From assembly GCA_965285935.1 (NCBI GenBank), contig OZ260666.1, positions 14,632,001 to 14,696,000 on the forward strand: 64,000 nt of DNA. The letters are read 5' to 3'. The notes under the pieces are model-generated. The model was given only the letters and a program-made list of their open reading frames with translations, did not search any database and was not told the origin of the DNA. This DNA comes from Ophelia neglecta (lineage: Eukaryota). Shown here piece after piece: positions 4,401 through 37,908 of this stretch; within the stretch, counting starts at the first letter, position 1, and every line of letters starts with the position of its first letter. Both the position numbers and the translations under genes were made by a program.

Positions 4401-7400
4401 CTAATCGCCGTTTTCGTACCATTTATAGGTCATTCGAGGTCGGTCGTGTTTCGGCTGGGAAGTGGATGTGACCATACATCTCATCTTGAAACCTTCCTGC
4501 TCGATTCGTGCTTGAACTGGTTCTCCTGTACAATCCAAAATATTCTAATTGTGTACAATGTTTTCAAAATCAGTTAATAGACTTACAATTGTATAGATAT
4601 AGTGATGAACACTACAAGGTTTCTCAGTTGTCTAAATGCTATGTATAGACGACACTAAGGTATCGATCGCCAAATTATGTTCTAATGCTTAACGAATGAA
4701 AACATCATTGCATGACAATGTCTGCTAAAAAGTAAGACTACCTACCCCATACAGAAACAGTACCGTTTGTTACCACTTGTTCCGACTGTTTACATGTGTA
4801 CACTCCTGCGTCCTGTAAGGTGACGTTTATCAAAGTAAAACCAAATAGGTCAGCACTGCGTTCAACGAACCCCTCAAAGACTTTCTGTGTAACATTGACT
4901 GAATGTTGATAAGCCGTTTTATGTATTTTATATTTGGACAAGTGGAACATTTTCAAATTAAAATTGTCTTCGCATTTCAAAGGCCGAGCAGTGTCTATAT
5001 CTAGAAAGCTCCAGCGAAGCGTGGCGTTTCCTGTTGTATAACTGCAGTTTAAGCGTCCGTCTGAAAGCGGTGGTAATAATGAGACTACATACATTTGCGA
5101 CTATGTGTTTTTTTTCTGGAAGTGAGCGTAATATATATAATAAATTTATAATTATTTAGAAACAATTGTACCCACAAGTTGGCACCGGTTATGATATACA
5201 CAAAGGCGTTTAATAGTTAACATTGCTTTTTTTGTTCAAATGTATATTTATATACCTCCAGATTGGGTGGTCCCAGCCAAATCCGGTGGGCCCTGCGTGA
5301 AATGTTCAGCCGACAAAGTCGTTTCCATTGCTTGACCTACAAAATTTTATAAGCTATACTGATACATTGCACTCGTGCTTTTCAAAATGACGTCACCTGT
5401 AGCAAAACTTTATTTTGCGACTTAGATCGGCTGTGTAAATTTGAGCGACTAGTTGATGGTTGTCGCATTGACTAGCTCGTTTTAAATGTTAATATTACAA
5501 AGCTCTAAGTTTTTTTCGCGACATGGTGCCACTATGAAAAAAAAACTCGATGGCTCAATCTTGGTGCCTATATACTAACAGAGTGGATACCTGGAATATA
5601 AACAATTTTTAGTTAGCAAGGCTAATCTTTATGTCGCTCCGACTATAACGAGCTTTACTGAGGCACTGGTCGTAGTACAAAATGGTGAATTTGTCCACCT
5701 ATGTATGTAATGATTACAGATGAATCTATTCCCAATTCACTAATGAAAAAATGGCTTTTACTTGGCTTACTCTCTGTAACGGAGCCCGTTTCAGTGAATT
5801 TTTAACTTAAAGATTGTGAGTGGATACCCGACAGACACAGCTAAACATTAAACAATTCTAGTCCATTAAATTGACCACAAATCACCAGATACCTACAGCA
5901 TCAGGCAACAAACATAAGAATAATAATTTAAGATTGATATAACATGTGATGAGTAGTATTCAAACCATTTTCCATGACGCGAGCTATAACACTAAACAGT
6001 GGGTCAGTAGTAAAGTAGAGCAGCGATAAAATATGATCAAGGGGATCCTAAGATGAACAAAGCCGTTTCATTGTGGTGAGATTATGGATAAATCTTTTAT
6101 CTCTAAAACACATGACCAGAGCAGAAGGAAGTCCCGACATACTAAATTGTGAGTGGGTTTCATATCTCGTTAATATTGTAACCGAACATTATCAGTATGA
6201 ATCAGGTTCTCATGGCGCCATGTCATATGATGAGAGTAGGTTGCCTAAAGACACTGGCTTCTTTTGCTGTCTGGTTGCTGAAATAATGGCAATAAGACCG
6301 TACTACACCAGTCTGAAAGACAGTCATCGATTGTACGTTGACTAATCCATTGAGTTTTCAAATCTTAAGAAATGGTCCACGATCTGCAATTAACTCTGTT
6401 ATTTACCATATTTTTTGAACTTTTTCTGATGATTTCACTGTGATAGCTTCGGAAAAAGGATGATATATGGGCAAAATTTGCATTAGGATCAGTGGTTTTG
6501 ATGCAAAATGGGACAATCGTTATGCATACAGTTGTCAGAATAAGAAAATATATGACACAGTATAGAGCAATACAAAGTAAACATGGTGGATTATATGAAC
6601 ACGGATGGTATGAATACTAAACCAGGTTAACGAGAGATATGGCCCCGTACAGCATTAGAAATTGCAACACTAAATGTACGCTATCTCCTTCTATTTACAC
6701 GACCTAAATACGACAGGCCTGTCGGTTGACACGTGTTATTAAGCAGGATATACAACAACAGTGTATTTATTAAGTGGATTACCAGCTGTTCATGCTGGTG
6801 AGTGGGAGATTAGAGATACTTCAATATACTCCGCGCTTCATAGTTTATATTGGGATCAAATTAAGCGGACAAATCTAGGGCAATATATTTACTTTAAAAG
6901 AATTTCAGCACATATATTATGCACACGACAATTGCATATTTTGGACTTGACATAAATGGCAAAATGTGCCGCAAAACACCTAAACTGATAAAGAGATGGC
7001 ATTGGCAAGACGCACAATGATAATGTGCCTAGTGTACTTACTTTTCGAAAGAACATTTTCACGCAGCGTAAAGAGTATCACTCCGATGAATACCAGTCCA
7101 GCAAGCGTTGACGTGATGATGAACCCAAAGGTTTTCCCCCTTATCTGACATCCTGGCCATCTTCGCATTCTGTACTCTTCCGATTCTCTTGATGGCTCGC
7201 CTGCCTCATAATCTGTACAAGGTTGGGTAGCAATCTCCAAAATGTTCAGGGGTATGGTCTCCGTGCTCATATCCTTACCCTCGATTGTGGGCAAATTGTG
7301 TTCATCACGCGATGTCCTGGACTCTTTGATCACTGTCGCTGAGCGATCAGAGTTTGGTTTAGACCGTGTTAAATGCGGATGTTCCTGCTCTTCTGAATGA

Positions 7401-8293
7401 ATATACGTAGTCCCTTTGTTCGAACAGTCAGAGGAGTCGGCAAATCTTGGCATTCTGTTTCCTGGGTCTTGGTCCAGTTTTTTTGGTGTTAGTACTGAAA
7501 AATGTACCATAGGGGAACTTTCCAATGTATGTTTACATTGTGTCTGATATTTGGATCCTTCATCAGTAGTATTAGGACAAGTGGTCTTTGCCGCTACCGA
7601 TTTTACCGCTGTGCTTTGCTGCCCATTGGTGTCCATGGAACCATCTTCAGGACCCAAGGAGCCCTTATCTTGGTCCACACCCCTCAATGCCTCCTTTGAA
7701 TACTCTCGCCTTTCCGATGAATTGATGACAAGAGTATTAGAAACCAGTCCGTCATACCTTCCTATCAATCCACTCTTTTCGTTTGACGGGTTTTCTTTGG
7801 ATCGAAGGTAGTTCTTCGGATCGTCCGATGATATAAGCCCAAGTTCCGAGATGTCAGTGTTTTCTACTTCAGCGTCCTTTCGCCCTTTGCAAGGGTCATT
7901 GGTGGTTTTCACATAAGTTTGTTCTTGGCGATCAGTGTACGCTTCATGACTACTATGTACTACGGGTCTTGGGTTGCTTACTTTGCAGAGGAGAGCAGAT
8001 GATTCCTCTTCATTTGTACAATCCTCAGGCCAACTGTTTTCTACGGGAATTTTGTTGCCCACTGTTTGTAGAGTAGGCGTAATGTTTGTTTGAGGGAATG
8101 GACCATATACAACAGTAGGTCTTTCAGCGAATACATCATACTCCTGCTCGTTTAAGATGGTCGGTGACAGTTTATCTTCAACTCTGCCTTTCTTAATGCT
8201 CATGGGTACCACTTGGTCTTCTAAAGGTGTTGGGGTTCCCGGTCGTATGCGACCTACAAGGTCTGGCAAGGAAAAACGATTCACTTTATCCAT
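4401..8293 (-). CDS. Gene B1: putative type II TM Ig-superfamily protein, ~590 aa (cytoplasmic tail, TM, stalk, 1 Ig plus half Ig, stop)
   Basis: Exons complement(8293..7042, 5336..5256, 5060..4746, 4525..4401), all GT-AG phase 1, 1773 nt in total. Start MDKVNRF is inferred. Single TM FGFIITSTLAGLVFIGVILFTL is preceded by basic residues. Ig motif FTLINVTLQDAGVYTC. The last exon stops at WYENGD*. Confidence 0.75.
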
Positions 8294-10280: not shown

Positions 10281-13200
10281 ATGATGGCTCGCATGCATTT
10301 AACCTATGCGTTGGTGCACTTGCACCTGCTTGTTACATTGATCAAAGGTTAGTTAATTTCCATAGTTTCGACTTAGTTACCACATATGTCCTGCACCTCA
10401 GCTTGTTGAGCTTCTTTTCTTCCTCGTCGCTTAACATTGATCAAAGGTTAGTTAATTTCCATAGTTTCGACTTAGTTACCAAATATGTCCTGCACCTCAG
10501 CTTGTTGAGCTTCTTTTCTTCCTCGTCGAAAACAATTTTTTCTGCAGCTAAGTAGTAAAGGATTAGGTAAATTATTAGGATTCAAAAGACCAACTGCGCT
10601 CCTTTCGTTGCAGATATGTTCACTTATGAATGTTCATTGTATGACTCATTTTTGTCGATTGGTGTAGCACAACTTGAAGATGGGCTTCCTATGATATATG
10701 TTTGTGACCTATTTTGTGGGTGTAATCCCCGAGGTACTAATAAAAGAAATGTACGCCTTCCCATCTCGAAATATTGACACAAGGGTTCCGCCTGGCCTTC
10801 TCTTTCGCGGCCATAATATATTTTTGACGAAAATCGATATTCTGCATAACCCTTTGATTCTTCATGCCAATATAAAAAAATAGGGTCATTTTATGTCTCT
10901 GTATAAGGTCTAGTTCAAAAGTTATGTGTTTAACTGATATCGCTATGTCTGCGGAGTGTCCACTCCCTTTGTTTCAAACAACTTTTGTACCTAATAATAC
11001 TTCACCTGTGGACTTATACTCAATTCTAAGTTTAGGTTTTAATGAATTTGTATTATATTGAAGCCGGGACACAAATCTCACGCACCATCCATGTTTGCGA
11101 AGGCGACACAATGAAGGTCAGCTTTGATTACCCGCATGGAAGGATGGGGGAAGCTACCTCGGTGCATGTAGAGCAGATAAAACCTATAAGCAGATACATT
11201 ATATATCAAGATTGGAATGAAAAGCCAACACCTGATGATGAGAGGGCGTGGATAGTTTGGAGAAAGACAAGCACTGGTGAACAAATCGAGGTAGGAATAA
11301 ACCACATAACTCTGTCTGATGAGGGGAGTTACGTTATTGATGTTTACTCGGATGGCTATGTGGAAACATATATTTTCTCAGTAAAGGTTTTGAACAACTC
11401 TGGTGAGTAGTTTTTTAATCTAGTTTCTGCTTTTATCTAGAATAAAATATAATAATTAATAACATCTCTCCCCACTTTCCCATATTTATATACATATATA
11501 AATACCATTCTACATCCATTTGGATGAATATTTTAATAAATATTTTTTCAATATTATTTTGTCAGTTAAATCAAATTCCAATTTTGTTGCACACTTTATC
11601 ACACTCAGTCTGCCCTGACCCTAAGAACTTGAGGCATCCGACAATCTCCTACAGACAGAAACCATCCTCTATAATACGTTTATACAACAAAACGTTGGAG
11701 CTCCGTGAACCAAGCAATGTTACACTGTTAGTGGACATACCTGCAGGGCATCCTCCTGTAATATGTACAATAGCCACAGATAAGTCTCAACATACTTGCA
11801 ATGGAAAGGTCAACATGACTTTCCTGTGTGAGGCTGAGCTCTTCTTGATATCGTCGGAACAGGAAATAAGAATAACCTTACATTTTATTGCTTACCGACC
11901 AATGACTACTAAGTTAGTTGCATTCGTCCTGGGTAAGGTTAATATTTGCATTAATAAATTTCTATATAAGATTATAAGGATTGATGGTACATTTTTACAT
12001 AGATAACGTGATAGACAAACGTGCCGCTTTAAACGACAAAGACTGGGGTGGAACTAATAACATAACACCATTGAAGATGCTACATGAAATCATATATTGT
12101 AATTAACAGAACATGATCTTCTGGAAGGCACGGAAATCAGCAAAATAAAAAATGAACATGATAAACCATCACCAGCAGTATATACTGCACGGGAGACCAA
12201 GGCAGCTCAAATGACCATTGATAGCGTTCTTGTGCTTGGGGGTTTTGTTTGCTTGTTCCTTGTCATCGCCCTTACGGCAGGAGCTCTGGTGGCACACCAT
12301 AGATGGAGAAAAGAGAGAGAACAAACCAGTGTGGATCGATTCGAACCTCCACGTACCGCGGCACAGGAAGAGGTACACCCCTGTCTCACCTTTCATACGA
12401 CATTCAAATGATACTTCTACTGTTCTTAGGAACATTGTAGTATTAATTCAACACCTTAGTATTAGTTGATAAATCATTTGCAATTCACTTCCACGATTGA
12501 ATTCATCGCCAAAAAAGCATCCTATGAACTATTTGATAGTGTTGTCCAAATAGTTTTTTTATTAAGGTTTAGTTTAGTAATGAATCATCAAAATCCATAT
12601 TTCTGTGTTGAAACATGCATAAGCATACATTCAATTCAGCCTGTCGTATCTCAGACAACGTTTTACCTTGTTTTCTTTTCACCACATGTTTACCTTCTGT
12701 ATTTGGTTAGATCGAAGAACGCCAGAATCTAGTCACTAATGACATGGACAAGCCAATCGCCTCAGCAGGTGATTGTTCCGTTTCTCAAATCATGGGTTCT
12801 GTAGACTTTAATACGGTACGAATCAGACTCCACAAGTTTCTGTTTATTCATTCTTCTACCATTAAAATAGTCTTCACGCCTGCTTTTATCATGAAATCTT
12901 AAAACTTGGTAATTATAATTTGTTCTCCTATTTCCGTCTTCTTCATGTCATAGATCTTGCCAAATGAAGGATTTTCTCCTCTACACATCGCAGCTATGGC
13001 CGGAACTGTTGATGAAGTAAAGCGCCACTGTAGGGATGGTGCTGACCTAAGTGAGCTTGACCCAATGAGTCGGACTGCACTGGCTGCAGCTGCTCGCAAT
13101 GGACATATATCTATTGTGCAATTTCTCATTGAGAAAGGCGCTGATGTCAATCACCCGGGCCCAGATGGTTTTCCCCCGGTAGCCAGCGCGGCAATTAAAG

Positions 13201-13928
13201 GTCAGACAGATGTAATCACTGTGCTATGTGAAAATGGCGCTGATCTCCGAATCATGGATAAAACTGGAGAAACTGCATTACACTACCCCTCCATTAAAGG
13301 AAATGTCAAGCTTATCAGCTTACTTTTGAGCAGAGGAGCTGATTTGCAAATATTGAATAAGCATGGACAAACACCACTGGGTTCTGCCTCAGAAGAGGGT
13401 CAGTTGTTAGCTGTAAAGTATCTCATTGATAAAGGTGCCGATATCAACAGGCCAGGCTGCAGTGGCAAACCCCCATTACACTGTGCCGCCAGGAACGGGC
13501 ATATAGCAGTCATACACTATCTTTTAGATAACGGCTGTGATATACACGCTTTAGATGACCTAAGTCAAGCCCCGCTTGGAGCCGCAGCTGGCAAAGGTTT
13601 AGTCGAAATAATGCGAAGTCTCATTGGTAAAGGAGCAAGTGTAAACCACCCTGGAATGTCTGGTCAACCTCCATTACACTGCGCAGCCGCGAAAGGACAA
13701 CTAGGGGCGATACACCTTCTCATAGAAAAAGGCGCAGATGTCCACATGAAAAATAAATTTGGCCAAACGGCAGTGGAAGTTGCTGCCAGTAAAGGTTTTA
13801 TTCCATGCGTGGAAGGTCTCATTGACAAAGGGGCTGCTGTTCCCCAGCCGGAAGTTGCTAGCCAGACAGACATACTAACCACTGTTGTGTTATTGGGGGA
13901 TTGTACTGCTGTTTGGAAGAATCATTAG
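10281..13928 (+). CDS. Gene A1: type I TM receptor, signal peptide - 2 Ig-like domains - TM - 9 ankyrin repeats, ~690 aa
   Basis: Exons 10281..10347 (MMARMHLTYALVHLHLLVTLIK), 11064..11402 (V-like, ITLSDEGSY), 11609..11932, 12110..12372 (TM VLVLGGFVCLFLVIALTAGALV), 12711..12815 (phase 0/0, possibly a cassette exon) and 12954..13928 (9 ANK). Phases are 1,1,1,0,0; 2073 nt; no internal stop. Confidence 0.85.
10335..10528. repeat. Local tandem duplication (~95-bp unit, 99-bp period) including the signal-peptide exon donor
   Basis: ACATTGATCAAAGGTTAGTT...TCCTCGTCG occurs at 10335-10429 and 10434-10528. There is a single unit at ~49918-50010 in copy 2. Confidence 0.9.
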
Positions 13929-18628: not shown

Positions 18629-21600
18629 TTAAGCCAAGGTAAATATGGTTTCATTTTTTTCGGTTATTGAAGAATTCGTAGATCCTTCATCGCTGACATC
18701 GGGTGAACCTAAGTTAAATATTTGTAAACAATGCTAAAAGTTCAAAAATATATTACATTGCTTTCCTAATATAGTACTTATCTTTGAAATATACATTTTT
18801 CGTGGATTTATGTGCCAAAATATCTAATGTATCTAATGAAGAATCGTGTGCCTCTTTAACCAGTTGGTCGTCCGGGTTATATCCGGTCTGATCAATATAC
18901 ACTAAACAATAATGTTTTGACAATAATATATGGATATACTTACAAATTATTTCAGGCAAAGCTGCTGTGCTGTTTGACACGTCACTCCTGACTCCAAACT
19001 CGTCTGCCAGAGACACCAGACACATCAGCGACTCGGTACAATCAATCACAGTGTCATCAATGTGTACGCTTGTTCCGTTTGTCTCTTGTGACTGCTCTCG
19101 GGTCTTGGAACCATTGGTGATGATCATCAGCGTAAGTTGTAATGGACTAGGCAGCTCCGAAACGCTACAATTAATCTTGTACGTTGTAGTTGGGTACACT
19201 GCTTGTACTTCAATAACATGTATATCAATCTTCGGCTTAGGAATATCTAAAATAAAAAGGCAATAATTATTGTTTCACTAAAAATGATAGGTTATTGTCA
19301 TACAAGGACAACAACTTGATTACAACAGAGTATGGCAGACTGATTCTGTATAGTTTATCATTGTTGAATGATCGGGCTGAAAAAGAATTGTAGTTATACC
19401 TACATGGTATTTCATTTGCTCAGAAAAAACACCTACTAATGAATACGTAACATGGGTAATCAGTATTTACCTTCTGGGGACATAAAGAATGCTTTACTTT
19501 GCCCAGACGAATACGGGGAATCAACTTCTGTGCCTTGACAGGAATAATGGTTATTGCCAGCTTCTTGCCAATATTCAAGTGGCGCGGGCAAATAGTACTA
19601 CTTACTCTCAGCCTCCACTTTCACATTGTTTCGGTACCACGAATACTGCATCCGAGGTCGCGCATTTTGTGGCTCGGATGTTGATATAACGTCACATCTC
19701 ATCTTGAAGCCTACTTGTGTTACCTTGGCTCGCTGAGGTTTCCCTAAAAAAAACAGAAAATATATGGCGGTAAATAAAATTAATCTTGTAGTCGGAAACC
19801 ACCTGCTTTAGGTTTAGTTTGAATATACAATGGATCAATGAAACAACTTTGTTTAGCAATTTTCGTTCATAAAATACAGCAATAAGCCAATTTGACAATT
19901 TACGTTTTAATATGGTAACGGATAACCAACTTTTATCAGTCACTAGCATCACAAATAATAATGAAATAATGTTTATAATAATAATAATATATCAATTTGT
20001 CACAGTATCAATTGATATATCCTACCCCATATGAACACGGTGCCGAGGGTCATAATCTGTCCTGCCTGTTTACATGCGTACTCCCCTGCGTCTTCCATGG
20101 TGACATTGAGCAAGGTGAAGCCAAAAATGGCGGCATCTTTATCAATAAACAATCTAAATATCTTCTTCGTTTCATTTCCGGGGTCGTCAATTGCAGAATT
20201 GTGCGTCGAGAAGTGAAGCAGATGGAACATTGTATGGTTAATATTGTCCTCACATTTCAACGGACGATTGGCGTCCGCGTCGAGGAAATCCCACATCAGG
20301 GTGGCATTGTCCCCGATCTTACTGCGACTGAAGTGGCTTTCTTAAAACAAACGAGTACGAAAATATCAGTATATTCTTGGAAAAACTTCAAAACTCGCAT
20401 TAGGCCAGCATGGAAAGACTAAACATTTGCTAATTATTTAAGCGAGCAAACCTAACAGGAAGTTGTTCATACTAAAAAGAAGTAGAGGACATTCGCATGA
20501 CCCTCTGACCGTCATAAATCACGACGATGATATTTTCAATTACCGAGCTTTAACCACATTAAAGGTCTTTTCCTCCAATTGGTATAGAAACTTACCCTTG
20601 ACCTCCACCAAGTAGGTAAAGTTACGCTCGTCTTGGCTGCACATGTAGCTCCCCGCATCTTGTTTTGTAACGTTCAACAAAACCATTGTAAACGAATCAT
20701 TGATTGGAACAACACTGTACCTCTCATCCATATCTACGGTGCCATAGTCAACGCGTGATTGGGAAACGTTGAAGATATTTTCGCCGATGTTATTGAAACA
20801 CACGCTGGTACGGCTTGGATCAGTAGAATCAATTTCCCAATGGATTGAAGCATTTCTGCCAACATATGCCACTAATATGTCAAAATCTGGTTTTTCTGAA
20901 AGGTCAATAAGATTAAATAATCAGAGTTTCGATATACATTTTAATCAAGCCATGCGCTACTGCATTTTACAATAAGATCAAATGTGCGCTTAAGGAGTAG
21001 CATAATAATCGACGTGAAACGACATGTAATATGCTCTACACATTTGTTTAAATTCCAGAAGCACGCTTTATATGACATTTCTTTTGAAAACATTATGTGT
21101 TTATATGTTCATTATAACATTAGGGGTAATTTCATTCGAGCTATTAAATTATTCAAGTTATGCTGCTATGACAAGAATTTCATTTGTTTGATAATTTGTT
21201 GCCAAGAAAGATGGCGGCCGGCGGATCTACAGCTTTGGCACTATTATCGGCTTTACACTAGAAATGATGATAAATTGAAAATGGGAAACGGCGAGATCCG
21301 TCCACATTGTGTGCACATGGGGACTTGTGTCAACTAGACCATCGTACATTTCACTCGATAAAACATTGTTGTTGTTAGAAGGCGAACTTATTATTTGAAA
21401 TTACTGTCAGGATGCCCACAGAAAAAAAGCTGACTAAATTAACAATATTAATAAACTGTCGGTTCGCTGAATTCTTCAGCCGTGAATATTTACACAAACA
21501 CGATAGTAATTATAATTAATGTGGTTTAATTCTGCTACTTTATTAAACTTATCAGCCAGACTTTCAACTTGACTCCGTTAGATCAGTTTGCTCCTCCCCC

Positions 21601-24600
21601 ACGTGCCGTTATTGCATTGTCTGAGGCACCCAATTTTTAATTTTTAAAGGATAGAAATTGCAATCTGTTAAGGAGCTATTATGTACTATTTATATCTTTC
21701 TATTTAATCTGCTAGCATCACAATTAATGCCCAGCGAGGTGAACACAGCGAATCGCCCGAGCCAATTGAGCGCATACGTGTAATAAGGGTAACGGCATGA
21801 AATGCATGCACTTTAAAAGTTAGAATTGTTCAAGTATTAAAGTGTTTTTTAACCTTACCTGTTACTTGACTGGAGAAGATTGTACTGTAACTGGCTGTTG
21901 TTAAAGGCTTTGCTGTGGTCATCGGATGTTTCCCTTTGGAATGAAACACACGTATTAGTGGCCGGAAGCACATCACGTTTAACCATTATAGTAGAGTAGT
22001 AAAGTATTGGACACTACTCTATTATTTGCTATTACAAAGACACCTAACATCTTTTATATTTCCAAGCATCTTGACTTGTTCCTTAGATTGCAGCAGCAAA
22101 CTTTAGCTTGCCAATTTTTGAGACATCGTTTTCAATATTTTGCCGACTAACTTCAGCTGCTCTTATGGACATTCTTTCTATGTCGCTTAAAATTGAAAAA
22201 AAAAAACATTGAGCGAAATGCGAAAGAGGGCTACGAACGGACGGGCCCTTTTATTCTAAACTCAATTCCTAACAAAAAGACGCATGAAAAATAATGGGTT
22301 TGAACGCCAACATTTCTCAGCCATGTTTCTCTGTTGATGTGCAAGGGCAATTTTCTGATAATGGTCGGACTAAATTTAACTTCGACTATTTATAAGCCCA
22401 AATAGAAATAATTGCATGAAACAATTATACACGGAATTATACTACTAAATAAAATAATCTCTGGTAATCTCTCTGACAACCAAAAAGGGAATAAAGTCAA
22501 TTTGATATACCGTATAAAGCAAAATAGCCATTAGGAGCATGCTGCAAATGGCAAATAGATAAAGTAAACATGTAACGTATTTTTAAACTTACAACTTAAC
22601 ACCCGAAATTCACGTAGTATCCAGGTCAATACTACCACAACTACCACCCCGACGAGCGCTGCCGTAGCGATGTATCTCAGTAATGTCCCGTTGACCCGAC
22701 AACCTCTCTTTCCACCTATGATTAGCTTTTCGTATTGGTTTGATGTCCCTTGCGCGTTTAATTCAATGCCTTCAATGCGATCGATAGGGGCTTCTTCCAA
22801 AGTTTCCAAACACACGATGTCAACGTCCATGTCTGCATCCTCGATACAGGAATAGATGTGCTCGTCCGCCGAGCTACGGCTGCCGCCATTTGTTGCCCGT
22901 ATGTTAGATTTCTCTCCACGACGGGTGGTCTTGGCTGAGAGGGGCTTTTGTGGTATTTCTGTATATGGATTTCTGTTTGCCCCGCTTTTCCTATGAGGCT
23001 TACCGGGAGATGGTTCAATTCTATTCCCGCGATCGGGAGCATGTAAATGGGGTTTAGGTGCATGCTCAGAATCTGTTGGAGCCAAATCAGCTATCTGGTG
23101 TACTAATGATTCCCTCATATCCATTCGATCAGAGACATGAGAGGGTGAACTCTTTTGAACGGAATTTTTATGGCCATTATTTTTGGATTTTCCCTGGCTT
23201 CCTAAGTGAATTTTGACATCTCTCGGGGATGAATCCCTGGATTTGAAATATTCTTCCTTTTTACCTAAATTTGAACAGTGTGGTTTGGGAGGAACGGCTG
23301 ATTCGATGGAAGCCGAATGTGTAGAAATTGCCCAGGGGCGAGTGTCCACGGTTGTAACGTCTCTTTCCGATCCAACTGCGGTACTTTCAAATATCTGGCT
23401 AGTCTTTTTGGGTTCCTTCAGGTCCTGTAATTCGCGGTATGTAGTGGGTGTTTCTAGGATTGATTCCTTTGGGGTAGCCGTTACTTTCCTTTCTGCAATG
23501 GGGGAATTTTCTTGACGCTGACTTGGTACAAAAGTCATCTGAGAGCGAGGCACCTTTGGGAAGTGGAAATAATCCGATCTGTCATCGAGGGCGTCATCAT
23601 TGGCTTTAATGTTACCTGTAGCCCACTCGTCCGTCGTCAGACTGGCCGTGTCGGAGGACCCAGTTGAAGAACCATCCTTCACAGTAGCTATTTCATTGTT
23701 ATGGCTGTATTGGTCCTTTTCAAGCTTTACCCCGGTGTCCTCATGATGGTGATCATTGATTGGAGGAGTATCTCTGGCTTTGAGATAATTCTTGTCCAAA
23801 TCTGAAGACTTTGGCCTGGGACAGCCGGTTGATTCGGGTGGTTTGATGGCGACATGTGCATTAGTTGAATGTTCACCATTGTCATTCACCAAAATCCTCT
23901 CACTACGAGGCACGTCGTTGAAATGAAAATAATCCTTTCGAGTGTCCAAAGCCGTACGTCCTTCTCCAGCGCTGCCAGAACTTTTCAGAACCTTTCTTGT
24001 TGGAATAGAACCCTTGAGACCTTGACCTTTTCCACTGATCGTGTGTTTTTCTATGATGGGTTCATTTTTTTTAGCACCACTGCCTGCTTGTTTATTCCTA
24101 ATTTCAATATTAGGCTTTTCTGTACCTGGCGCTTGTACCAGAGTCATCTGACTGCGGGGTACATGAGGGAAATGGAAATAATCAGACCTTTCATCTGGGA
24201 AGCCATCCTCGGGTCCAATGTTAGCCGCAGCGCCGCGGTCCGTCGTCAAGCTGCCCGTGTCTGAAGACCCAGTTGAGGAGCTATTGTCCACATCGGCTAT
24301 TACCAGGTTAGGGACGCTATATTCATAATTCGCCCCGGTGTTCTGTTGATGGTTAGAATTGCATCGTGGAGCTTCAAGGGATTTCCGAAGTTCGTCATGG
24401 TTGCCTATATCTGACGCCTGTCGCTCTGGAGAATTGGTTAAACCAGGAGTTGAGAGGACGGCAGGAGTCGGAGTTTCATCATTGACCATAATCATCTCGC
24501 TTCGAGGTACTTCCTTGAAGTGAAAATAGTCCTTACGAGTGTCCTCCATAGTTGCAAGTCCTTGGTTTGATATGTCCTCCGTTTCATCACCGATAGCCGC

Positions 24601-24837
24601 CATCCAGTCGTCTGTCGTCAGGCTAGCTGAGTCCGAGGACCCTGTGGTGGAGCCATCGACCCTGTCAATTTCATCCCCAGCGTTGCTATATCCTGTATTA
24701 ATTCGTAGATGATCCTGGCATTGTACGCTAGGCTCGGCTCCTGTTTGTTTTGGACTGGTTTCAAGGTCGTCGGTTTGGTGATTAGGACTCGAGTGGTCAC
24801 CTTTGCATGGCGACGCAGACTTTTCCAACGCATCCAT
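18629..24837 (-). CDS. Gene D1: putative type II TM protein with a ~720-aa repetitive tail and 4 Ig domains; in-frame TAG in Ig3 (truncated or null allele)
   Basis: Exons complement(24837..22593, 21933..21859, 20895..20596, 20340..20026, 19743..19471, 19246..18944, 18708..18629), all phase 1, 3591 nt. TM YIATAALVGVVVVVVLTWIL. Many N-x-S/T sequons C-terminal to the TM. TAG at 19600-19598. The terminal exon is the least certain. Confidence 0.78.
23530..24660 (-). repeat. Coding repeats in the D tail: 4x DxRxDYFHFxxVPRS and 3x STGSSDxxSLTTD
   Basis: Read directly from the translation. Higher-order period of about 200 aa (~600 nt). Confidence 0.9.
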
Positions 24838-27027
24838 GCTTAAGACCAAACTATAATCTGAGAAATGATCCTGTGGAACAATATAGTGAAGCCTCCATCG
24901 GATTTACAACTGTTGAGCAGTTTGTCCTATATATATATTGACCTCTAATTCAAATTGAGGAAACTTATTTTTAGCCTTATCTAACTTGGCTATATGTACC
25001 CGGATGAAGAATGATCTATGTTTGCCATCGTTATCAAATACACCAGAATTATGGATAATAACCTGTGTTTTCTTTCCAATTATATCTAATTATTGGGAAG
25101 TCATGGGGCTGCATATTCAAATATAAACATGTAGGAGGAAGCATATATTGGACAATTTTCAAAAATGTGCGTTGTACGTGACCTTTTAATATACGATAGC
25201 TTCGAAGATAATCGAGCATGACACAGCCTCAGGTCAAATGCAGGTCAAACCTGAGGCCCAGTTTATACAAGAATTTCTAATGATTGCTCACACTACGCAT
25301 CTCATGCTGAAACTGCGCATCATGAATGAGCATGCAGCATACTGATATTTTGTCATATATCTCATATGTATAATACTTAAGGTTCCGCGCGTGTGCACTG
25401 GTGCGCGCTGCTCGCGCGGGTTTTCTTTGGCGTCGAGGAAGGACCACTCTATTCGCTGCTTCTAAACATACATCATGATTCAGTGTAGACTGAAAGTCCC
25501 ACTAGGGTACTACAGCCGTGTCAAAATAACACGTGACACTCTGATAACGCCTAAGTTAGCGCTCGCTCTGTTTCGACTAAGTGCGCAGGAGCCATGGCGA
25601 TAAGCGTGCAGGATACGGCAGGGCTATTTGGTGGTGAGGAAAATCTTGTCAAGAAAGGCGAAAATGCCGGCAAAATTAGGGGTAGCGTGAGATTTTAGTA
25701 ACACGGAGTGGTTCAAATTCATGCATTAGCTTCTGGGGAAAATGTTTGTGTCATCATATGAGTCATTTACCGAAGGGCGAACACAGTTTCTGCGATGTGT
25801 GGCAATCAGTTGTTGATTTGCGAAAAATGCTTATTACACTTGAAAGCTAAAATTTATGATTAATACTAAACACTCCATAAGCATGTGTCTCAGTTAGGGG
25901 GAAAGTAATCGGATAAATTATTTTAATAAGGTTATAAACGAGATAATATTGTGAGAGGGATTCATACAACCGACATAAATTGTACTGAACCTCTGACGAA
26001 TGATCGCCATATATTGCTAAAGAAACCTAATCATTCACGATGTTACACTTTTGCAGTCTACTCGGCCCAACTCAGTAGCATCCCATAATTTTTTGTGATG
26101 ACAATCTAGAGCCTTCCTCGCAGAATATACCGCGAGCGGAGCACCCCTGTGAAAAGTCTCCGAGGGACTAATCTTAATTCTACGCATCGATATCAGAACA
26201 AAGTCTTATTCAATTCAGATGAACTAGTAAATGTGTAACTATCTTACAAAGTTAGCGTGTAAGCCAGACCCTTTATCAATGTGACCATCATCAAGAGTTT
26301 CTTCCTGACTGAAACGCGACGCAACCGACGTCAACTGTTTCCACGCGTTGCCACATGGGATAGCAGTAGGGGACAAAAATGAAAGTAATGGCCGACATAA
26401 TATTGAATCTGCGACATCAGAATGTTGTCGGTGCCGATTTGCCGCTACCAGATGTGAAAGAAAACAACCGAGTTGATTTTTAAAACAATGGCTGGCCTGC
26501 CGAGGATTTGCACTATTTGCCTGCAGTTCTAATGTATAGTCGTTTAAGTTGAGATCAACATACATGGCTGACACGAGCTTGACCCAAATAAAACTTTTTT
26601 GCATCCGCTTAGTGGTTTTATGTACTTGGGATACATTTAAACAAAATGCATGACAAAATCATCCTGCTGTTGGCGCAAACAAGCATCAGATGATATATGG
26701 AGTGAAGCTAGCACATGCTGGCTACAGGCTTGGAAAGAATGATACACTTTCAGTATTATCAACCGACACCGCCATTAGGTCGCTGATATGTTGCTTTTTA
26801 CCATAGCCCTAGTCGCAGTACCGGCTAGACTAGGCAATCACGGTAAACTAAGCGCACACTATGTTTTTTGGAGCAGTCCGTTAACCCCCCCCCCCCCCCT
26901 ATCCCACACAAAGTCTTCCCACTACATACAAAATGGAATAGCCTTGAACACGACACAAGCTTAATGTCTCATTTGTTGTCGCAATTCCTGATACTTTTCG
27001 CATTATTTTTCATAATTGCGAAGACCA

Positions 27028-30000: not shown

Positions 30001-31868
30001 ACCGTAAACGTTATCAATTAAGGAAATTGTAATCCCCTTCGTCATAATCATGACAAATCTCTTCCACTTTCTTTTTCATTTGCATATTATTTTCCTGAAC
30101 ACTGAAAATGAGGTAAATCTCCAAGTTTGAATCTATCTGGCCCATTGATATGGCATATTACAATGATAATCAATAATCAAGTATAATCAATTATTTAGCT
30201 CTAATACCGTCTAATAGAACCGTCAGTTGCAAGCATTAACATCACTCTTCAGTTCTCTAGCTAAGTGATCAATATATACATTTGGCTTTCCCAGGGTGAT
30301 AGGTCACATGCATCGGTTGTATACTGATATAGCAGTGCATGCTGTAGATTCAGGCTTTCAGTAATACAAAATGACACTGATTCATTTTAGAGATTAAACT
30401 TTATATTTCAGAGTGATGGAGATTTAATGTCCTGAATTTCGTTGGAATTCGATGACCTTTTATATCGGTCTTATTTTTCAAGACTAATCCATTTGTATGC
30501 TCACATTTAAGACAAAGATTTAACTACGATACCCTCTCCCAGGAAATACCTTAAACTGTCTTACGTATCTGTAGACCATTATTAGCGCACCTATTCAGGT
30601 TGTGAAAACCCTATCACGAAGGACGGGCACCTTGGACCATTGTATTGACCAAACACTACAAGTTAAGCGTGTCCATTATTATGTCATCTAAAAAGAAACC
30701 ACATGTATAACTGTACTATTGATTTGGCATTGACCGATGTGTCATAGAAAAAAAGATCTGTCACTCACTTGTGGGTATTAAGTTTAAGAAGGAATTGCTT
30801 AAATATATATCAAGAGGATTGATTGGCAGAAAATATAAGCAAGGGGTCTAATGATGGCCTTTTATTTGATCTTAACGTCAATATCTGATTCCAATTGGGG
30901 AGATTAATCATCCGATGCTGAAATGATGTACCGAATGCATATTGTTAAATCACATCCCTAATTTTCCTTATTGACTTGTGTCATAGTGTCTTATATATAA
31001 TAATCTCTTCGGTAAAAAAAAATTATCTATTTCCCTTAAAAATACTTCCAAATGTTTAATTTCTGTAAAATTAAGATTACACTGTGACACCCATTGTCCT
31101 GCTCAGTACAGTAAAAAACAATTCTTAATTACATTTAACGATAGCAATATAAATTAATTTTCTATTTCCTTTCCAAAATAATGTGCCAAAGCCAATATAC
31201 GAAAATAAACTGCCCTCGTGTAAAGCCTGGCCTAAAGATTTTTTTAAAGGAATTAAGCAAACAGAACTGTCATCCCTCATTTATTTTGTTTAAAAAGGGT
31301 CTGGAAACACCATTTTATATTAAAATCAGATTATAAAATTGATGTGCCTCACTGTCTTGAGAATATTTGGGAAAAAAATTCTGGTTCATCGATTTGGCGC
31401 TTCCGAGTTGGCAATTCGGGTTTACTTGTTCATCCTCTACTACATTTTTATGTACACAACTACGTCATAAGGAAACGTTTAAATTAAAAGTCATAGTAAG
31501 CAGTTGGCAGGTTTGCTTTTGCTTACATTTTCTCGTGTGTGTACCACCTGTACGAATCACTAATTTCTGATCTTCCTAATCAATAATATTGCATTTTCAG
31601 ATAATCAACGTGTCATATTTCTCATATAGTAATATTTTTCATCAGTTGTACGACGTAGCTCTGAACGCTCGGCAACATATAAAATAATGCCTGTTTTCCT
31701 TTATATAACAAATTACAGATTCCTTGAGAGAATTAAATTGGCAGAGGTGACGTTAGCAAGCTAGCAAACATGAAACTTATATCATGTGTATTATCTATGG
31801 TGTTGGTTCATTCCCACACAGGCGTTGCAATTGACGGTAAGAATATGCTCCTTCTTGAGATTTCTGAA

Positions 31869-32076
31869 NNNNNNNNNNNNNNNNNNNNNNNNNNNNNNNN
31901 NNNNNNNNNNNNNNNNNNNNNNNNNNNNNNNNNNNNNNNNNNNNNNNNNNNNNNNNNNNNNNNNNNNNNNNNNNNNNNNNNNNNNNNNNNNNNNNNNNNN
32001 NNNNNNNNNNNNNNNNNNNNNNNNNNNNNNNNNNNNNNNNNNNNNNNNNNNNNNNNNNNNNNNNNNNNNNNNNNNN
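31869..32076. other. Assembly gap (208 N) in intron 1 of gene C
   Basis: Run of N. Confidence 1.
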
Positions 32077-32577
32077 AAACCTTCTCATTTCATCAAGGTT
32101 TTTGCACGCAACTTGACCATTTGATCTCCATTATTTATCAACACTTGTTTTGTTTACAGTAAGACGCCCTGGCCCTGTGTCTGTCTGTGAGGGTGATGAA
32201 GCCAAATTCCAGGTGGATTTCCATCCAGGAATGATGGACACATTAAAGTCGGTACACGTTGAACAGGTCTCGCCGAAGGCAAGATACATCCTATATAAGA
32301 ACCGGAACGAAAAAACACACTTGGATGAGCCAAGGGCCTGGCTTGCCTGGAAAAAGATAAGCAATGGAGATCAACTTGAATTCCTCATTCGAAACATAAC
32401 TGTATTGGACGATGGTATCTATGAAATATATGTATATTGGGGAACAAAAGTGATGGAAATAAGTGCCATAGTGAATGTGTTTGGTTAGTCCTCGAGAACA
32501 ATTACAAAACACTTTATTGAGTTACAATAATTAATCAATCTAACGATCCATCTTTATATATATATATATATATCATC

Positions 32578-32703
32578 AATTCTTTTGTCACTTTCAACGA
32601 ATTGTATAATTGGGGTAATTATATATATATATATATATATAATTACATAATTACCCCAATAATTTCCCCAATTATACCATTAGTTGAAAGTGACAAAAGA
32701 ATT
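32578..32703. repeat. AT-centred inverted repeat (hairpin or cruciform)
   Basis: AATTCTTTTGTCACTTTCAAC ... GTTGAAAGTGACAAAAGAATT are exact reverse complements. Inner arms TATAATTGGGG / CCCCAATTATA surround an (AT)n run. Confidence 0.85.
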
Positions 32704-34763
32704 AATGAAACCAAAGAATCATAATGTAATACATTGAGTCACACTCACACTATATTTGTTTTCCTCATGTTTTAAAATCTGGCATGGAATCGGTGTAAAT
32801 TCGAAGTTTAGTCAATTTATTAAAGAATGTTAAGGCGCTATATGTTATCGCACAGATAGTATTCACCTATTGCTGGATATGGATTTTGTACTGATACTAT
32901 TAGAAATGCTATAACAATGCTTGGAATGGATCTAACATGTATTAGACACTAGGCGAGACCGGCGTACCAGCAATGAGAAGGGAATACATGTATCTCAGTA
33001 CGTTTTGAGAAGAGGGAAAATTACGATGATTGAGACAACCATAATTTCAGTGATAAATGGGTCAAACTACCTTTTCTTCTAGAAAGATTATATTTTAGTT
33101 TATATATATTAAATTGTTTGGCTAACCTTAACTACCATATGCGAATTTGCTCAACGTCACATGTTAGTAACCGGATTGTGGTTAAAATGAAGATATTTTA
33201 CATCGTTGGGGTTGGTTGAGGATGGATATTGAATGTCTAATAATGCCCGGCACCATTGGTTCCACTTTTCTATTATTTCATAATATTAAACATAAAAAGG
33301 CATCTTCGATCTGTGCCTACTGCTTGTATAGGCGAATGATATAATTATCTTCTGGACATGGTTTGCGACACAATAGACCTAAAATAGGACATATTAAGTA
33401 TATACCATGCATGTCAATGAAATGTCTCCATTGAATACACCGAATTCATGTTATGTAATCAATTCGTTATCCATGTTTTGTAGGCTGCCCTGACAGAGAA
33501 TGGCTGATGTACCCTCCAATCTCCTATGGATAAAACACATCCGCATTCACCAGTGTATACAATGACGGCCTGGAAGTCAAACCAGGTAATGTGATCCTCC
33601 GGGTGGATATACCGGCAGCCAATCCGCCAGTCTTCTGCACCGTGTCCACCGTGTCAACAGCACAGCCTCACTGCATGGGACTGCCAGACATAACTTGTAC
33701 CTTGTCCAATGGCAAGGCACATTATCACTGCAGAGGAACAACACATATGACATATATGTGTGAAGTGGATCTTCAGTTTGATGTTGCCAGGGAGGACCAG
33801 ACTATAAACGTGAGCCTGTCATTTATCGCATATGGAGCAAAGACAACCCAACTACGTGTCCACGTCAAAGGTTAGTTAGGTCGTATAAGAATCGTGTGGC
33901 GTTTTATAGCCCTAGGCTGAAAGAATAACTATGAAAAGGAAACTCTCTGACATTTGTATTTTGCACTATTAATAGTCAAACTATTGGAAGTGTGTATGCC
34001 ATATTCATATTGCAACTTGTATTCACGTTACTTAGCATACCTAGTGTTCTTTTCATACAGGCACATTCATAAGATCATTTAATGCTTTTCGTTCATCAGA
34101 GGAAATTATAGAAGAAGTGACGACAACCATCGTATCTGGACAAGAGCATCCCAAAAGCACAAAATCAACGCCGGCAACTGTAATTACCATTGTTGTTTTA
34201 GTTACACTGGCAATAATTGGTGTTTTAGCCGCGGTGTCATACTATCAGCTAAGACAACAAAAAGAGGAAAACACCAACCGAACAGATGTAGAGGTAACAA
34301 CATACATTATGATGGCTTGCTTTTGATCAAATTTAAAAGTCCTAATAAACAAAGAGTTCGACTAATGTTTCATTTCAAATATGATATAATAAATAAAGGA
34401 AAGAAATAAAGTAAAAAGAAACGGGAGTTGATACCCGGCAGAGAAAGCAAAATTATTAATTCATTAAATCGGTAGAAAATCAGCGGGAACCGACTGCAAT
34501 TACAAATCAATCTAGGGCCTACACTTTGAGTACTGCCATATTTGAACTTTTTATAAGTGTATTTTAAGACAGGAAATGACCTACCTGGTGCCATGTGCCG
34601 ATAAACGCTAAAAATATAAATCCTACCAATAGAAACACTCACATTATACGAACAAAATAGTTGCATTATTTCGACATGGGCATTATGATGCCTACGGCAA
34701 ACGTTTTCAACAGATAATGATTCGTTTTAAGGACCACAATAATGTACTTTTGTTCTCTCATAG

Positions 34764-35404
34764 GGTAAAGCAACCGAGCCACTTGTTCCTTCTGTGCAAA
34801 GTACAATTAGGACCCCAACGGAATTTTTTTTTCTTCTCTGCACATTGCGGCTTTTAATGGTGATTTGGCTGAGAAATGAGAAATGGCCTTGATTTACAAC
34901 TGTTAGACAAAACGGGTCGGACGCCATTGGTTGCTTATGCTCGAGAAGGTTATATGAGTATTGTCCGGTATCTCATTGAAAAGGGTGCTGATGTCAATTA
35001 CTCAGGTATTGGAGGATACCCATCCTTATCTGGGGAAGCCATTAAGGGCCACTTGGATGTAATAGAAATATTATGCGAAAATGGCGCTGATCTACAAACA
35101 CCAAATAGTAATGGAGAAACAGCTTTACACTACCCTGCCATGAAAGGAGATATAAAGACAATGCGGGTTCTTTTGAATGGAAGAAATGCTGATATTCAAA
35201 TTCTGAATGAACGCGTACAAACGCCGCTTGTTACTTCTTAAGTTGCTGTCACACTTTAGCGTATAGAGCTAACGTGTGTCTGGCGTATTGAAAAATTGGG
35301 TGTACGTTCGCGTAAGTTGCCATTCGTTCGTGACACGTTTGACATAAGGTCTTTGGCAGCGGTTAAATCGCTCAGTGACCACGGTGCCAATGTGGACCGG
35401 CCAG
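34764..35404 (+). pseudogene. Decayed duplicate of the gene C ankyrin exon (cassette 1)
   Basis: The acceptor and ~130 bp of upstream intron are homologous to those before 36943. Begins GKATEPLVPSV, frameshifts in a T run and stops at TGA 34890-34892. ANK homology continues in ORF 34876-35241, is interrupted by an ~105-bp insert, and resumes at 35348-35404. Confidence 0.85.
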
Positions 35405-36103
35405 TATTTGCTATATCGCCTTCAGTCTGGTATGACGGACGATACTGCGTATAAAACTTGTTACTGCGTAATATGCGCTGGTGTCACACGTGCTGCTGCT
35501 GTGAAATGTTATCTTCAAGTTAACACAACATTCAGACAGCTAACTTGCTATAATGGTTAGATTTTGTTGGTTATTTGGAACCGGACACAACAATAATGTT
35601 TTATGCCTTAGCCCCCAGGGGCAAGGTAGCTGTTCAGTGGGCAGGCTTTACTTGGCACCCGCCTTCCCTTGCGCTGATTAACAAATACAATGTAATGCTC
35701 CTTCTAATGCAGTGATTAACTGTAGTCTCCAACCATCCCCACTCCTTGGACTTGATTGGTTGGTTGTTTGTGGTTTTTCGTGACTTTCAACACTTATATG
35801 GCCATATCGCCACGTTGCCTACTTGAGGCAGTGGGCTCATTGCCCTCTTCGTGGATTTATTTCAGTAAATACCAGACCAAAGATGTTGCTAGAATGATGC
35901 GTTCCACTTTAAGAATTAAGCGACATTCGATTCCAAACTGTTAGAATTACAAAACAATCAAATGCCTTAACACTTTGCATTGTCACATTTTAAGCTTTCT
36001 TTTATCAGCTTCATGCCAATGAAAATAATAATGTTGTACGAAGCATATTCTCATTCTTTTCGTTTCAAGTCGCACACTAATATTTTCTTACGTTTTCTCC
36101 TAG

Positions 36104-36610
36104 ACAGAGCAAAACATCCCTCTTACTCATCCAAAAGAACCTATTCTGCCGAAGCCGGAGGAGGATTTTTTTCATCTGAAAACTGGGGCTCCGAACGCTG
36201 ATTTAGATGAGGTAAAGCTTTTGTGTCAAAACGGTTTTGTAAACAAAAATTAGAGAAATCGGTTGAACTATAGTCGGTGCCTATGAGCGCACAGGTTATA
36301 TTTCATTGAAAAGGACGGTGATGTCAATTACGCAGTTCCCGGAGGTTACGCCGCCTTATCTGGGGCTGTTTTCAAAGGACACTTGGATTATAGATCTATT
36401 GTGTAAACATCGCGCCGAACTACAAACAGCTTGTAAAGATGGATAAACCATTTTATGCTAACCTGCAGTGAACAGAGCCGTAGAGGCAGTTCGGGTTCTT
36501 TTGAATGAAGGCGCTGATAATTTAACTCTAAATACAAACGCTGCTTGCCATGATTTTCGAAAAGATTATGTATTGACTGTTAAATGGCCCATTACCAAAG
36601 GTGCCAATTG
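36104..36610 (+). pseudogene. Older decayed duplicate of the ankyrin exon (cassette 2)
   Basis: A phase-0 acceptor gives TEQNIPLTHPKEPILPKPEEDFFHLKTGAPNADLDEVKLLCQNG...*, which aligns to the start of the intact exon. Downstream DNA resembles ANK repeats 2-5 with indels. Confidence 0.7.
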
Positions 36611-37908
36611 TAGACATGCCATACTAGAAAGGCATAATCAGAATCAGAAATATCTCTATTTTGGCCATTCACGAATATATACATACAATAAACGATCACA
36701 ATAAGCTTTACAGACATGAAATGAACAGGGTGACCCTCACTAGGGCTGCTGTGCTGCCGCTAGCGTGGGGGCCACCTTCTATATAATAGAAAGTCATTAT
36801 CCAACCAAAGGAAACACTCATATTATACTAACAAAGTGGCTGCATTATTTCGAAATGAGCATGATAATGACTACTGTAAACGTTTCAAACAGATAATGTT
36901 TCGTTTCGAGCACCATAATAATGTATTTTTCTTCGCTCATAGGGTGCAGCAACCGAGCCACTTGTTCCTTCTGTGGACAAAACTATTAGGACCCCAGCGC
37001 AAGATTTTTCTCCTCTTCACATTGCGGCTTTGAACAATGATTTGAATGAGGTAAAGCGTCTGTGTAAAAATGGCGCTGAACTAGAAGTATTAGACAAAAT
37101 GGGTCGTACGCCACTCGGTGCCTCTGCTCGCGAAGGTCATACGTGTATTGTCCGGTATCTAATTGAGGAAGGTGCTGATGTCAATTACTCAGGATCCGGA
37201 GGTTACCCAGCCTTATCTGGGGCGGCCATCAAGGGCCACTTGGATATAATAGAACTATTGTGCGAAAATGGCGCTGAGCTTCACACAACAGATAGTAATG
37301 GAGAAACAGCTTTACACTACCCAGCCATGAAAGGAGACATAGAGACAATGCGGGTGCTGTTGAGTAGAAATGCTGATATTCAAATTCTAAATGAACACGG
37401 ACAAACGCCGCTTGCTATTGCTTCAGAAAAAGGTCATTTGCCAGCTGTTAAATGGCTAATTCGCCAAGGTGCCAATGTAGACCGGCCAGGCAGTGAAGGC
37501 AAGCCCCCGTTACACTGCGCGGCTGGGAAAGGACGCACGGAAGTTATAGAATGTCTCTTGGATCACGACGCAAACATACATACAGTAAATAAATTCGGCC
37601 AATCACCGCTTGGATCTGCTGCTGAGAAAGAGCAAATAGAGACAATGATAAACCTCATCCAGAGAGGCGCCAGTGTTAACCATCCGGAAGAAAACGGCCA
37701 ACCTCCTCTCCACTGTGCAGTATATAAGGAGGAACAGCTGAAGTCACTGCGGCTTCTCTTGGACAAAGGTGCAAACGAGGTCATGAGAAATAAAAACGGT
37801 CTTACTCCAGTTGATGTCGCCCGTAAAAATGGACATTTGCAAGCAGTTGAATGGTTAATCGACAAAGGTGCTTCTGAAAAACAGAGCAAGGCAAGCACTC
37901 AGTGTTAA

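Follow-up and report, generated by a model that had tools for sequence, protein, structure and literature searches.

Tandemly arrayed genes of Ophelia neglecta predicted to encode type II membrane proteins with immunoglobulin-like ectodomains

This analysis concerns two genes, D and B, and the gene family to which they belong, in a window of 64,000 nucleotides (the whole stretch of DNA that was analysed) from Ophelia neglecta (NCBI GenBank assembly GCA_965285935.1, contig OZ260666.1; C9:14632001-14696000). The genome comprises 762 Mb, and nearly all of its sequence lies in seven large chromosomes. The GC content of the window is 33-45%, and its genes have short introns with canonical GT-AG borders. 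The window contains a tandem segmental duplication of about 39.5 kb, in which the part from 1 to 24.8 kb corresponds to that from 38.4 to 64 kb with an identity of 92-100%. Each duplicated unit carries two minus-strand genes, B and D, together with plus-strand genes composed of immunoglobulin (Ig)-like exons and ankyrin repeats. The original prediction, made from the letters of the window, held that the products of D and B are Ig-superfamily (IgSF) proteins with an inverted (type II) topology. The structure of both genes was followed exon by exon and compared with that of their paralogs throughout the genome.

Exon 1 of D (22593-24837; all features of D and B given here are on the minus strand) starts with an ATG at 24837, comprises 748 codons plus 1 nt and would encode a cytoplasmic tail followed by a signal-anchor transmembrane segment. 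The open frame that holds it has 772 codons (24849-22531), with its first ATG at 24837. Hydropathy, charge and N-glycosylation sequons (N-x-S/T) were computed exon by exon, using Kyte-Doolittle windows of 9 and 19 residues. The results showed that 721 hydrophilic residues, acidic and rich in S, T and P (D+E 111, K+R 87, S+T 135 and P 50 of 720 residues), precede the sole transmembrane helix of D (22615-22674; residues 722-741, YIATAAL...TWIL), which reaches a 19-residue maximum of 2.76; no other segment of D, in any exon, reaches 1.6 with this window. The first 30 residues are acidic and hydrophilic, and the 9-residue maximum over the first 40 residues is -0.08. A basic patch, KRGCR (22696-22710), lies 8 residues ahead of the helix on its N-terminal, predicted cytoplasmic side. 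The exon ends on a T at 22593 and is followed by a phase-1 donor (GTAAGT, 22592-22587). Exon 1 of gene B (7042-8293) is laid out in the same manner, with an ATG at 8293, 387 hydrophilic residues, the basic stretch RMRRW..RGK (7171-7133), a transmembrane segment at 7132-7064 and, after a final A, the phase-1 donor GTAAGT. These values bear out the original prediction, which had counted about 720 (D) and 390 (B) hydrophilic residues before the only transmembrane segment, had seen no signal peptide and had placed basic residues on the N-terminal side of the helix.

Downstream of exon 1, D continues with a T/S-rich stalk exon (21859-21933; 25 codons, phase 1-1), four Ig-like exons and a short last exon. 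Ig1 (20596-20895) is V-like, phase 1-1, and has five sequons (alignment A4); Ig2 (20026-20340), with a predicted V-set fold, is phase 1-1 and has four sequons (alignment A2); Ig3 (19471-19743) is a C2-like domain of the C..W..C type, phase 1-1, and holds an in-frame TAG in the copy described here (copy 1); and Ig4 (18944-19246) is phase 1-1 with four sequons and three Cys. The last coding exon (18629-18708) encodes 25 hydrophilic residues with two sequons and ends in a TAA at 18631-18629; it contains neither a transmembrane segment nor a glycosylphosphatidylinositol (GPI)-like tail. All exon borders of D are canonical AG/GT, the internal exons are phase 1-1, and the frame leads from the ATG at 24837 to the TAA at 18629. 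The 443 residues after the helix contain 15 sequons, whereas the 720 residues before it contain two, one of which stands directly against the helix. The T/S-rich stalk and the sequon-rich Ig exons that had been placed after the transmembrane segment are thus present as described.

The last 267 residues of D exon 1, used as a query in six frames across the genome, gave at least 76 matches, and the profile A1 (last 160 residues of exon 1) gave at least 124 at E <= 1e-5, about 90 of them in open frames of 420 amino acids or more. The matches lie on C1, C2, C5, C7, C8, C9 and C12, mostly less than 25 Mb from a chromosome end. End clusters were seen at 0.6-23 and 146-148.5 Mb of C1 (149.5 Mb), at 0.3-6.3 and 112-121 Mb of C2 (122 Mb), at 1.7-4.5 Mb of C7 and at 65-71 Mb of C12 (76 Mb). 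On C9, about 12 D-like and about 12 B-like first exons are spread over some 700 kb (14.27-14.98 Mb), some of them inverted and some broken. The comparative set consisted of 20 distant paralogs with their flanks, which are 21-30% identical to D over the A1 region. The DNA of the family members gives one architecture. A single large exon encodes, in this order, 370-720 signal-less N-terminal residues, a basic patch and the only transmembrane segment; beyond its phase-1 donor come a stalk exon rich in T and S and between one and four Ig-like exons of phase 1-1, the first ones V-set-like and the third C2-like. The recurrence of this pattern in about 20 distant paralogs on seven chromosomes goes far past what chance would give.

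Outside this genome, an exhaustive profile search among 1.84 billion representative proteins gave only two matches. They come from two short genomic contigs of another organism (L031 and L032; Logan run ERR14113986) and are about 33% identical to the best paralog. The tails are shorter, with 118 and 190 residues before the helix, and the arrangement of PLPP-P, xIYSxL, transmembrane segment and donor is kept, as are the ATG position and the phase-1 donor (2/2). On these contigs the family open reading frames (ORFs) were called as stand-alone, unspliced proteins (P0001 and P0002). A word-based homologue search with D residues 560-760 gave no match, and exon 1 had no Pfam, PDB-profile or Atlas match. 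Beyond this genome, the putative type II IgSF family is known from just a single further organism with sequence data.

The nature of the domains encoded by the Ig-like exons, each of which holds one domain and is phase 1-1, was examined by profile search and structure modelling. The AlphaFold2 (AF2) model of Ig2, made with 18 paralogs, has nine strands and a predicted local distance difference test (pLDDT) score of 81.7. Its best Foldseek matches were all V-set domains (myelin P0, BTN3A1 IgV, nectin-like 1 and PD-L1 IgV), with a template-modelling score of about 0.68 (0.6-0.7) and E about 3e-6, and on this model the Ig2 exon is predicted to fold as a V-set domain. W16, C29, G85 and C89 are invariant in Ig2, and the DAGxYxC motif is present (alignment A2); the first Cys lies 13 residues after the conserved Trp, an atypical position, in Ig2 and the V-like domains. 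Pfam ig was found in 12 and V-set in 8 of the 18 Ig2 exons (E < 0.01 for ig), mostly below threshold, and the V-like Ig exon of gene B (4746-5060, phase 1-1) scored 24.4 bits for ig, over the cut-off of 21.8. In Ig3, C16, W35 and C68 are invariant; the AF2 model of an intact copy has a pLDDT of 76, and Ig3 is essentially without a Pfam match.

The conserved parts of the region before the helix look like short linear motifs of the cytosolic kind, with putative binding functions read from consensus patterns only. The tails contain (Y/H)SEIPxRPLPPRP, which resembles a class-I SH3 ligand, and three YxxI/L motifs, namely YSEI, EHxYSxI (EHxYSxISDY) and N-x-YEKL. The D version of the family-wide EHxYSxI tyrosine motif is EHIYSCI (22843-22863). 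N-[EDQ]-YEKL stands 15-20 residues ahead of the helix in the family and, as NQYEKL (22723-22740), 17 residues ahead of it in D; in an alignment of 17 paralogs, conservation is 90% or more for each of N112, Y114 and L117, and E115 is found in all. A motif resembling an LC3-interacting region (LIR), mostly S[LM]TTD[DE]WAA[ILV], occurs once per tail in 19 of 21 paralogs, and S-L-T-T-D-D-W-A-A-I resembles in form an acidic, phosphorylatable LIR of the p62 type. D carries this acidic, S/T-rich tryptophan motif as SLTTDDW at 24604-24624 and in a second copy at 23623-23643; both the two LIR-like copies and the fourfold DYFxF (DYFHF) of D arose via internal duplication. Classical immunoreceptor motifs were considered for the tyrosine motifs and rejected. 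EH-T-Y-S-x-I and N-E-Y-E-K-L carry H and N at position -2 and do not fit the strict immunoreceptor tyrosine-based inhibitory motif (ITIM) [SIVL]xYxx[IVL]; they lie about 40 residues apart, compared with the YxxL/I-x6-12-YxxL/I of the corresponding activation motif (ITAM); and a hemITAM reading was ruled out on consensus positions.

Whether the transmembrane exon is joined to the Ig exons was judged from splice sites and gene order. Ig2 and Ig3 exons, at some loci together with Ig1 or Ig4, were found 3' of the transmembrane exon at 19 of 20 loci, with strand and order unchanged, and in the paralogs the Ig exons lie 0.5-9 kb downstream of it. A phase-1 donor (GT[AGT][ACG]GT) stands about 10 codons past the helix in 22 of 22 paralogs, read from codon position 2, in the variants GTAAGT, GTGAGT, GTACGT, GTAGGT and GTTAGT. 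The residue encoded at the donor varies (G, C or S), and the frames past it diverge and stop at differing distances. An apparent conserved peptide after the helix, G-K/E/T-F/L, was rejected as such, being the splice donor. Phase 1 is likewise kept at all 21 donors of Ig2 and at all 18 acceptors of Ig3. Paralogs L018 and L027 have stalk exons related to that of D (H-[PR]-x-x-M-T-x-S-A-T-T-A). A scan for leader exons (ATG, hydrophobic core and phase-1 donor) in the 45 kb that separate exon 1 from the first Ig exon at 19 loci found no conserved signal-peptide-like exon. It returned six signal-peptide-like candidates at two of the 19 loci, against one in the antisense control; those of L013 are a second fragment of the transmembrane exon and those of L014 are not conserved. 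The L013 fragment (about 4567-4651 in oriented coordinates) represents the transmembrane end of exon 1, carries a phase-1 donor of its own and lies between exon 1 and the Ig exons, and the Ig exons of L013 may belong to a different or rearranged copy. Because the scan gave no conserved candidate and the donors and acceptors are all phase 1, the predicted Ig exons are taken to have no leader of their own and the transmembrane exon to be their only in-phase partner. From the conserved phase-1 splice sites and the gene order we infer that transmembrane and ectodomain exons would be carried on one mRNA.

The start of the large exon is equally regular. In 20 of 21 members an in-frame stop precedes its ATG by 1-36 codons, the start is ATGG in 20 of 21 (the first residues being MD, ME, MA or MG), and the N-terminal 9-residue hydropathy is at most 1.21 in all 21, in keeping with the absence of a signal peptide in D. 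In paralogs L020 and L029 the stretch that separates the in-frame stop from the ATG contains no AG; L018 and L027 have a pyrimidine-rich cag acceptor 14-21 nt upstream, with an in-frame stop between acceptor and ATG. Because of these stop and AG positions no upstream coding exon is possible in the four members, and no signal-peptide exon was found upstream. Several paralogs show a pyrimidine tract and cag 14-40 nt before the start (L018:4100-4147, L027:4100-4133 and window 24838-24880), which suggests an intron in the 5' untranslated region or a trans-splice acceptor. At the other end of the gene, a search within 2.5 kb of the last Ig exon at 18 loci for phase-1 exons whose 19-residue hydropathy is at least 1.8 gave 0 hits on the sense strand and 2 on the antisense strand, which served as control, so a second, C-terminal transmembrane exon was found neither in D nor on the sense strand of these loci.

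The orientation of the helix was read from the charge of its flanks and from the distribution of sequons. The 15 residues before the helix have a mean of 4.24 K+R and a net charge of +3.06, whereas the stretch from the helix to the donor has a mean of 0.76 K+R and a net charge of +0.06; an excess of charge on the N side, as the positive-inside rule has it, was found in 16 of 17 sequences. The Ig exons (4,992 residues) hold 2.18 sequons per 100 residues, about three times the density before the helix (0.74 in 7,707 residues; Fisher p = 6e-12). As is established for signal-anchor insertion, a signal-less domain of 370-720 residues cannot cross the membrane of the endoplasmic reticulum ahead of the first hydrophobic segment. 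The tail would be kept in the cytosol because such a large domain cannot be translocated and because the positive charge is on the N side; the transmembrane segment would act as an uncleaved signal anchor, with the presumably glycosylated Ig domains outside. This reading withstood each test that could be applied and is strongly backed by the comparison of paralogs. We put the probability that the family consists of single-pass type II (N-in/C-out) membrane glycoproteins with Ig ectodomains at roughly three in four.

Several points weigh against this reading. The topology rests on statistics of hydropathy, charge and sequons, and the C flank used for the charge count has only about 6.5 residues up to the splice site. 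Several members have an acceptor-like site 15-40 nt ahead of the ATG, which makes the existence of an upstream exon probable; in those members that allowed a check, a part of the family, this exon is non-coding. On the side of the ectodomain, D Ig1 reaches 23.1 bits for V-set (E 8.6e-5; cut-off 26) and D Ig2 19.1 bits for ig (cut-off 21.8). The fold matches of Ig3 are weak and of C2/FN3 type (CD22, JAM, CD2 and Fc receptors; template-modelling score 0.55-0.60, E 8e-3 or worse), and Ig4, without any database match, is called Ig-like from its Cys spacing and exon phase alone. Finally, D copy 1 has a TAG in Ig3 and B stops in its Ig3-like exon, so that neither is a full canonical member.

The last point leads to the alternative that survives best, namely that the locus at 18629-24837 is a pseudogene copy in a decaying array, truncated or dead and giving no functional protein. 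The TAG of copy 1 (19600-19598) lies in frame inside a newly formed GTAAGT and is created by AGTAAGTAG, and the tandem copy of D, 39.7 kb away, has an intact Ig3 exon (59159-59431, minus strand) with AGGAGCAAG at the site of AGTAAGTAG in copy 1. The two Ig3 exons differ at 12 positions in 273 nt, all in two patches about 44 nt apart. These patches (19551-19605 in copy 1, compared with 59239-59293 in the twin) change the predicted C'-E region, and one of them creates both the TAG and the GTAAGT; the two-patch difference looks like gene conversion or a hypervariable patch. In gene B the Ig3-like exon (4401-4525) is truncated, with a TAG after 40 codons that follows ...WYENGD in both tandem copies (4401-4525 and 43943-44067), and B-type genes may naturally end after a single V-like domain. 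Decay is also seen among the D-like copies, two of which have frames of 374 codons, while one contains a TAG and one is in fragments. Against loss of function, exon 1 and the remaining exons of copy 1 are intact, 8 of 10 D-like copies keep an open exon 1 frame of about 770-790 codons, and dN/dS (the ratio of non-synonymous to synonymous divergence) in exon 1 of the D-like copies is 0.5-0.9, below 1, at dS up to 0.09; besides the twin, the distant paralogs have stop-free Ig exons. For copy 1 we consider this alternative a serious one, only somewhat short of even odds. It covers a single copy, and the architecture of the family is unaffected by it.

The type II reading of the family as a whole is challenged by three further alternatives. 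In the first, the transmembrane segment is a cleaved internal signal or the ectodomain is shed, so that the Ig part is mainly secreted and the tail fragment stays or is released. Most of the A1 helices contain a GG pair (V-I-G-G-L-L-W-A-L), which is absent from D and B and could be a helix-packing or intramembrane-cleavage site. Helix-weakening residues favour intramembrane cleavage of type II proteins, which makes the conserved pair a point for cleavage, and the T/S-rich stalk could be a site of shedding; against this, the sequence after the helix (WAL-R/Q-E/D-F/Y-G; alignment A1) does not offer signal peptidase its preferred small residues at -1 and -3. We regard processing of this kind as improbable.

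The second alternative, only marginally less probable than the first, is that two genes are present: the big exon would give a cytosolic protein with a tail anchor, and the Ig exons would form a gene of their own, for a secreted or membrane-bound product, that is always co-duplicated with it. An unspliced product is conceivable, since the frame runs 5-40 codons past the donor to a stop, and gene callers gave stand-alone ORFs on the contigs of the other organism. Set against this are the phase-1 consensus donor, which is kept in 24 of 24 sequences when the codons beyond it are not, the phase-1 start of all stalk and Ig exons without an ATG-plus-hydrophobic leader, the lack of a shared signal-peptide-like exon across the 19 loci, and an order and strand that are kept at 19 of 20 loci on seven chromosomes.

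The third, that the proteins are type I after all, with an undetected upstream signal-peptide exon placing the big region outside and the Ig domains in the cytosol, or with a transmembrane segment that inserts N-out, can appeal to the acceptor-like sites, which make upstream exons probable, and to the D frame, which is open for 22 codons upstream of the ATG, and is nevertheless very improbable in view of the stop and AG positions in L018, L020, L027 and L029, the conserved ATGG start, the sequon-poor pre-helix region with its PxxP, YxxL and LIR-like motifs, the positive charge on the N side and the sequon-rich Ig exons, whose conserved Cys pairs fit an oxidising, glycosylating compartment.

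If the type II reading is correct, the most likely mode of action would be that of a surface recognition receptor whose Ig domains bind ligand, with the N-terminal tail as a docking platform that recruits SH2/SH3 adaptors and sorting machinery. The tandem arrays, the location near chromosome ends and the clustering of variable patches suggest that the family serves in immune or self/non-self recognition, and it is on such features that we infer a receptor function in immunity or allorecognition. In the window its members adjoin type I Ig-ankyrin receptor genes, in large, recently duplicated arrays near chromosome ends. A wider and speculative interpretation, which we think unlikely to hold in full, would make these proteins a hitherto unknown class of recognition receptor in animals, with variable V-like ectodomains and with long, disordered tails that recruit SH2/SH3 adaptors and, through the near-universal LIR-like motif, Atg8/LC3, and that are perhaps released by intramembrane cleavage at the GG pair, forming a polymorphic system of immunity or allorecognition together with the Ig-ankyrin neighbours.

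These neighbours are plus-strand genes at 10281-13928, 31770-38834 and 50480-53366, composed of V-like Ig exons and an ankyrin-repeat exon; the latter encodes 323 residues (Pfam Ank_2, E 9e-65), and a search with the ankyrin exon brought up generic ankyrin proteins only. One Ig-ankyrin gene stands head-to-head with gene B, and about 2 kb separates their starts. A run of N at about 31870-32080, either an assembly gap or a masked stretch, lies within a plus-strand Ig-like region.

If true, the type II reading means that a signal anchor can be used to present Ig ectodomains, in a family of 100 or more members, and that a layout of the kind known from natural killer (NK) cell lectin-like receptors was built independently from Ig domains, beside type I Ig-ankyrin genes. 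The family would then be a new candidate recognition system for comparative immunology. Automatic annotation is likely to split or miss these genes, because exon 1 has no Pfam, PDB or Atlas match and the two matches outside this genome were called as stand-alone ORFs.

In general usage a membrane protein of the IgSF is regarded, almost by definition, as either type I or GPI-anchored. KIR/LILR, SIRP, NITR, the butyrophilins, myelin P0 and Hydractinia Alr share with the present family V-set-like domains and phase 1-1 exons, and these type I IgSF families likewise have tandem arrays and cytoplasmic tyrosine motifs. Their order is a cleaved signal peptide, an N-terminal Ig part, a transmembrane segment and a C-terminal tail, whereas here it is reversed and signal-less; and in their V domains the first Cys stands before the conserved W, whereas here it follows 13 residues after.

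Type II topology is linked to lectin-like, TNF-like, collagenous and protease ectodomains. Teneurins, collagen XVII and the transferrin receptor are type II proteins with a long, largely disordered N-terminal intracellular domain that carries proline-rich or YxxPhi motifs. The likeness to the present family lies in the long tail with motifs, the signal anchor and the large C-terminal ectodomain; however, their ectodomains are unrelated (EGF/YD shell, collagen and protease-like), and they are encoded by single or few genes compared with 100 or more here. TMEM106B has type II topology too; its N-terminal cytoplasmic region is disordered, and on the luminal side it has a glycosylated seven-strand beta-sandwich that is Ig-related (PMC12297828). 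It differs in being a lysosomal protein of 274 amino acids with a single FN3-like domain of another family, and has no V-set domain, gene array or sequence similarity in common with the present family. A search of the full-text literature, in which TMEM106B was the only type II protein with an Ig-related fold to turn up, gave no described type II IgSF family, which is not proof of absence.

The original prediction had likened the layout to that of NK lectin receptors, and this part of it stands. Ly49, NKG2/CD94, CLEC-2 and Dectin-1 have the same tail with tyrosine motifs, signal anchor, stalk and C-terminal ectodomain, and the NK and myeloid lectin-like receptors likewise form clustered, fast-duplicating multigene families. 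The likeness does not extend to the domains themselves: Pfam scans of the exons gave no lectin family and no C-type lectin domain is present, the ectodomain is of Ig type, the tails have 370-720 residues compared with about 40-70, strict ITIM, ITAM or hemITAM motifs are lacking, and the sequences are not homologous. The family thus does not belong to the NK-complex lectin-like receptors and resembles them in layout only.

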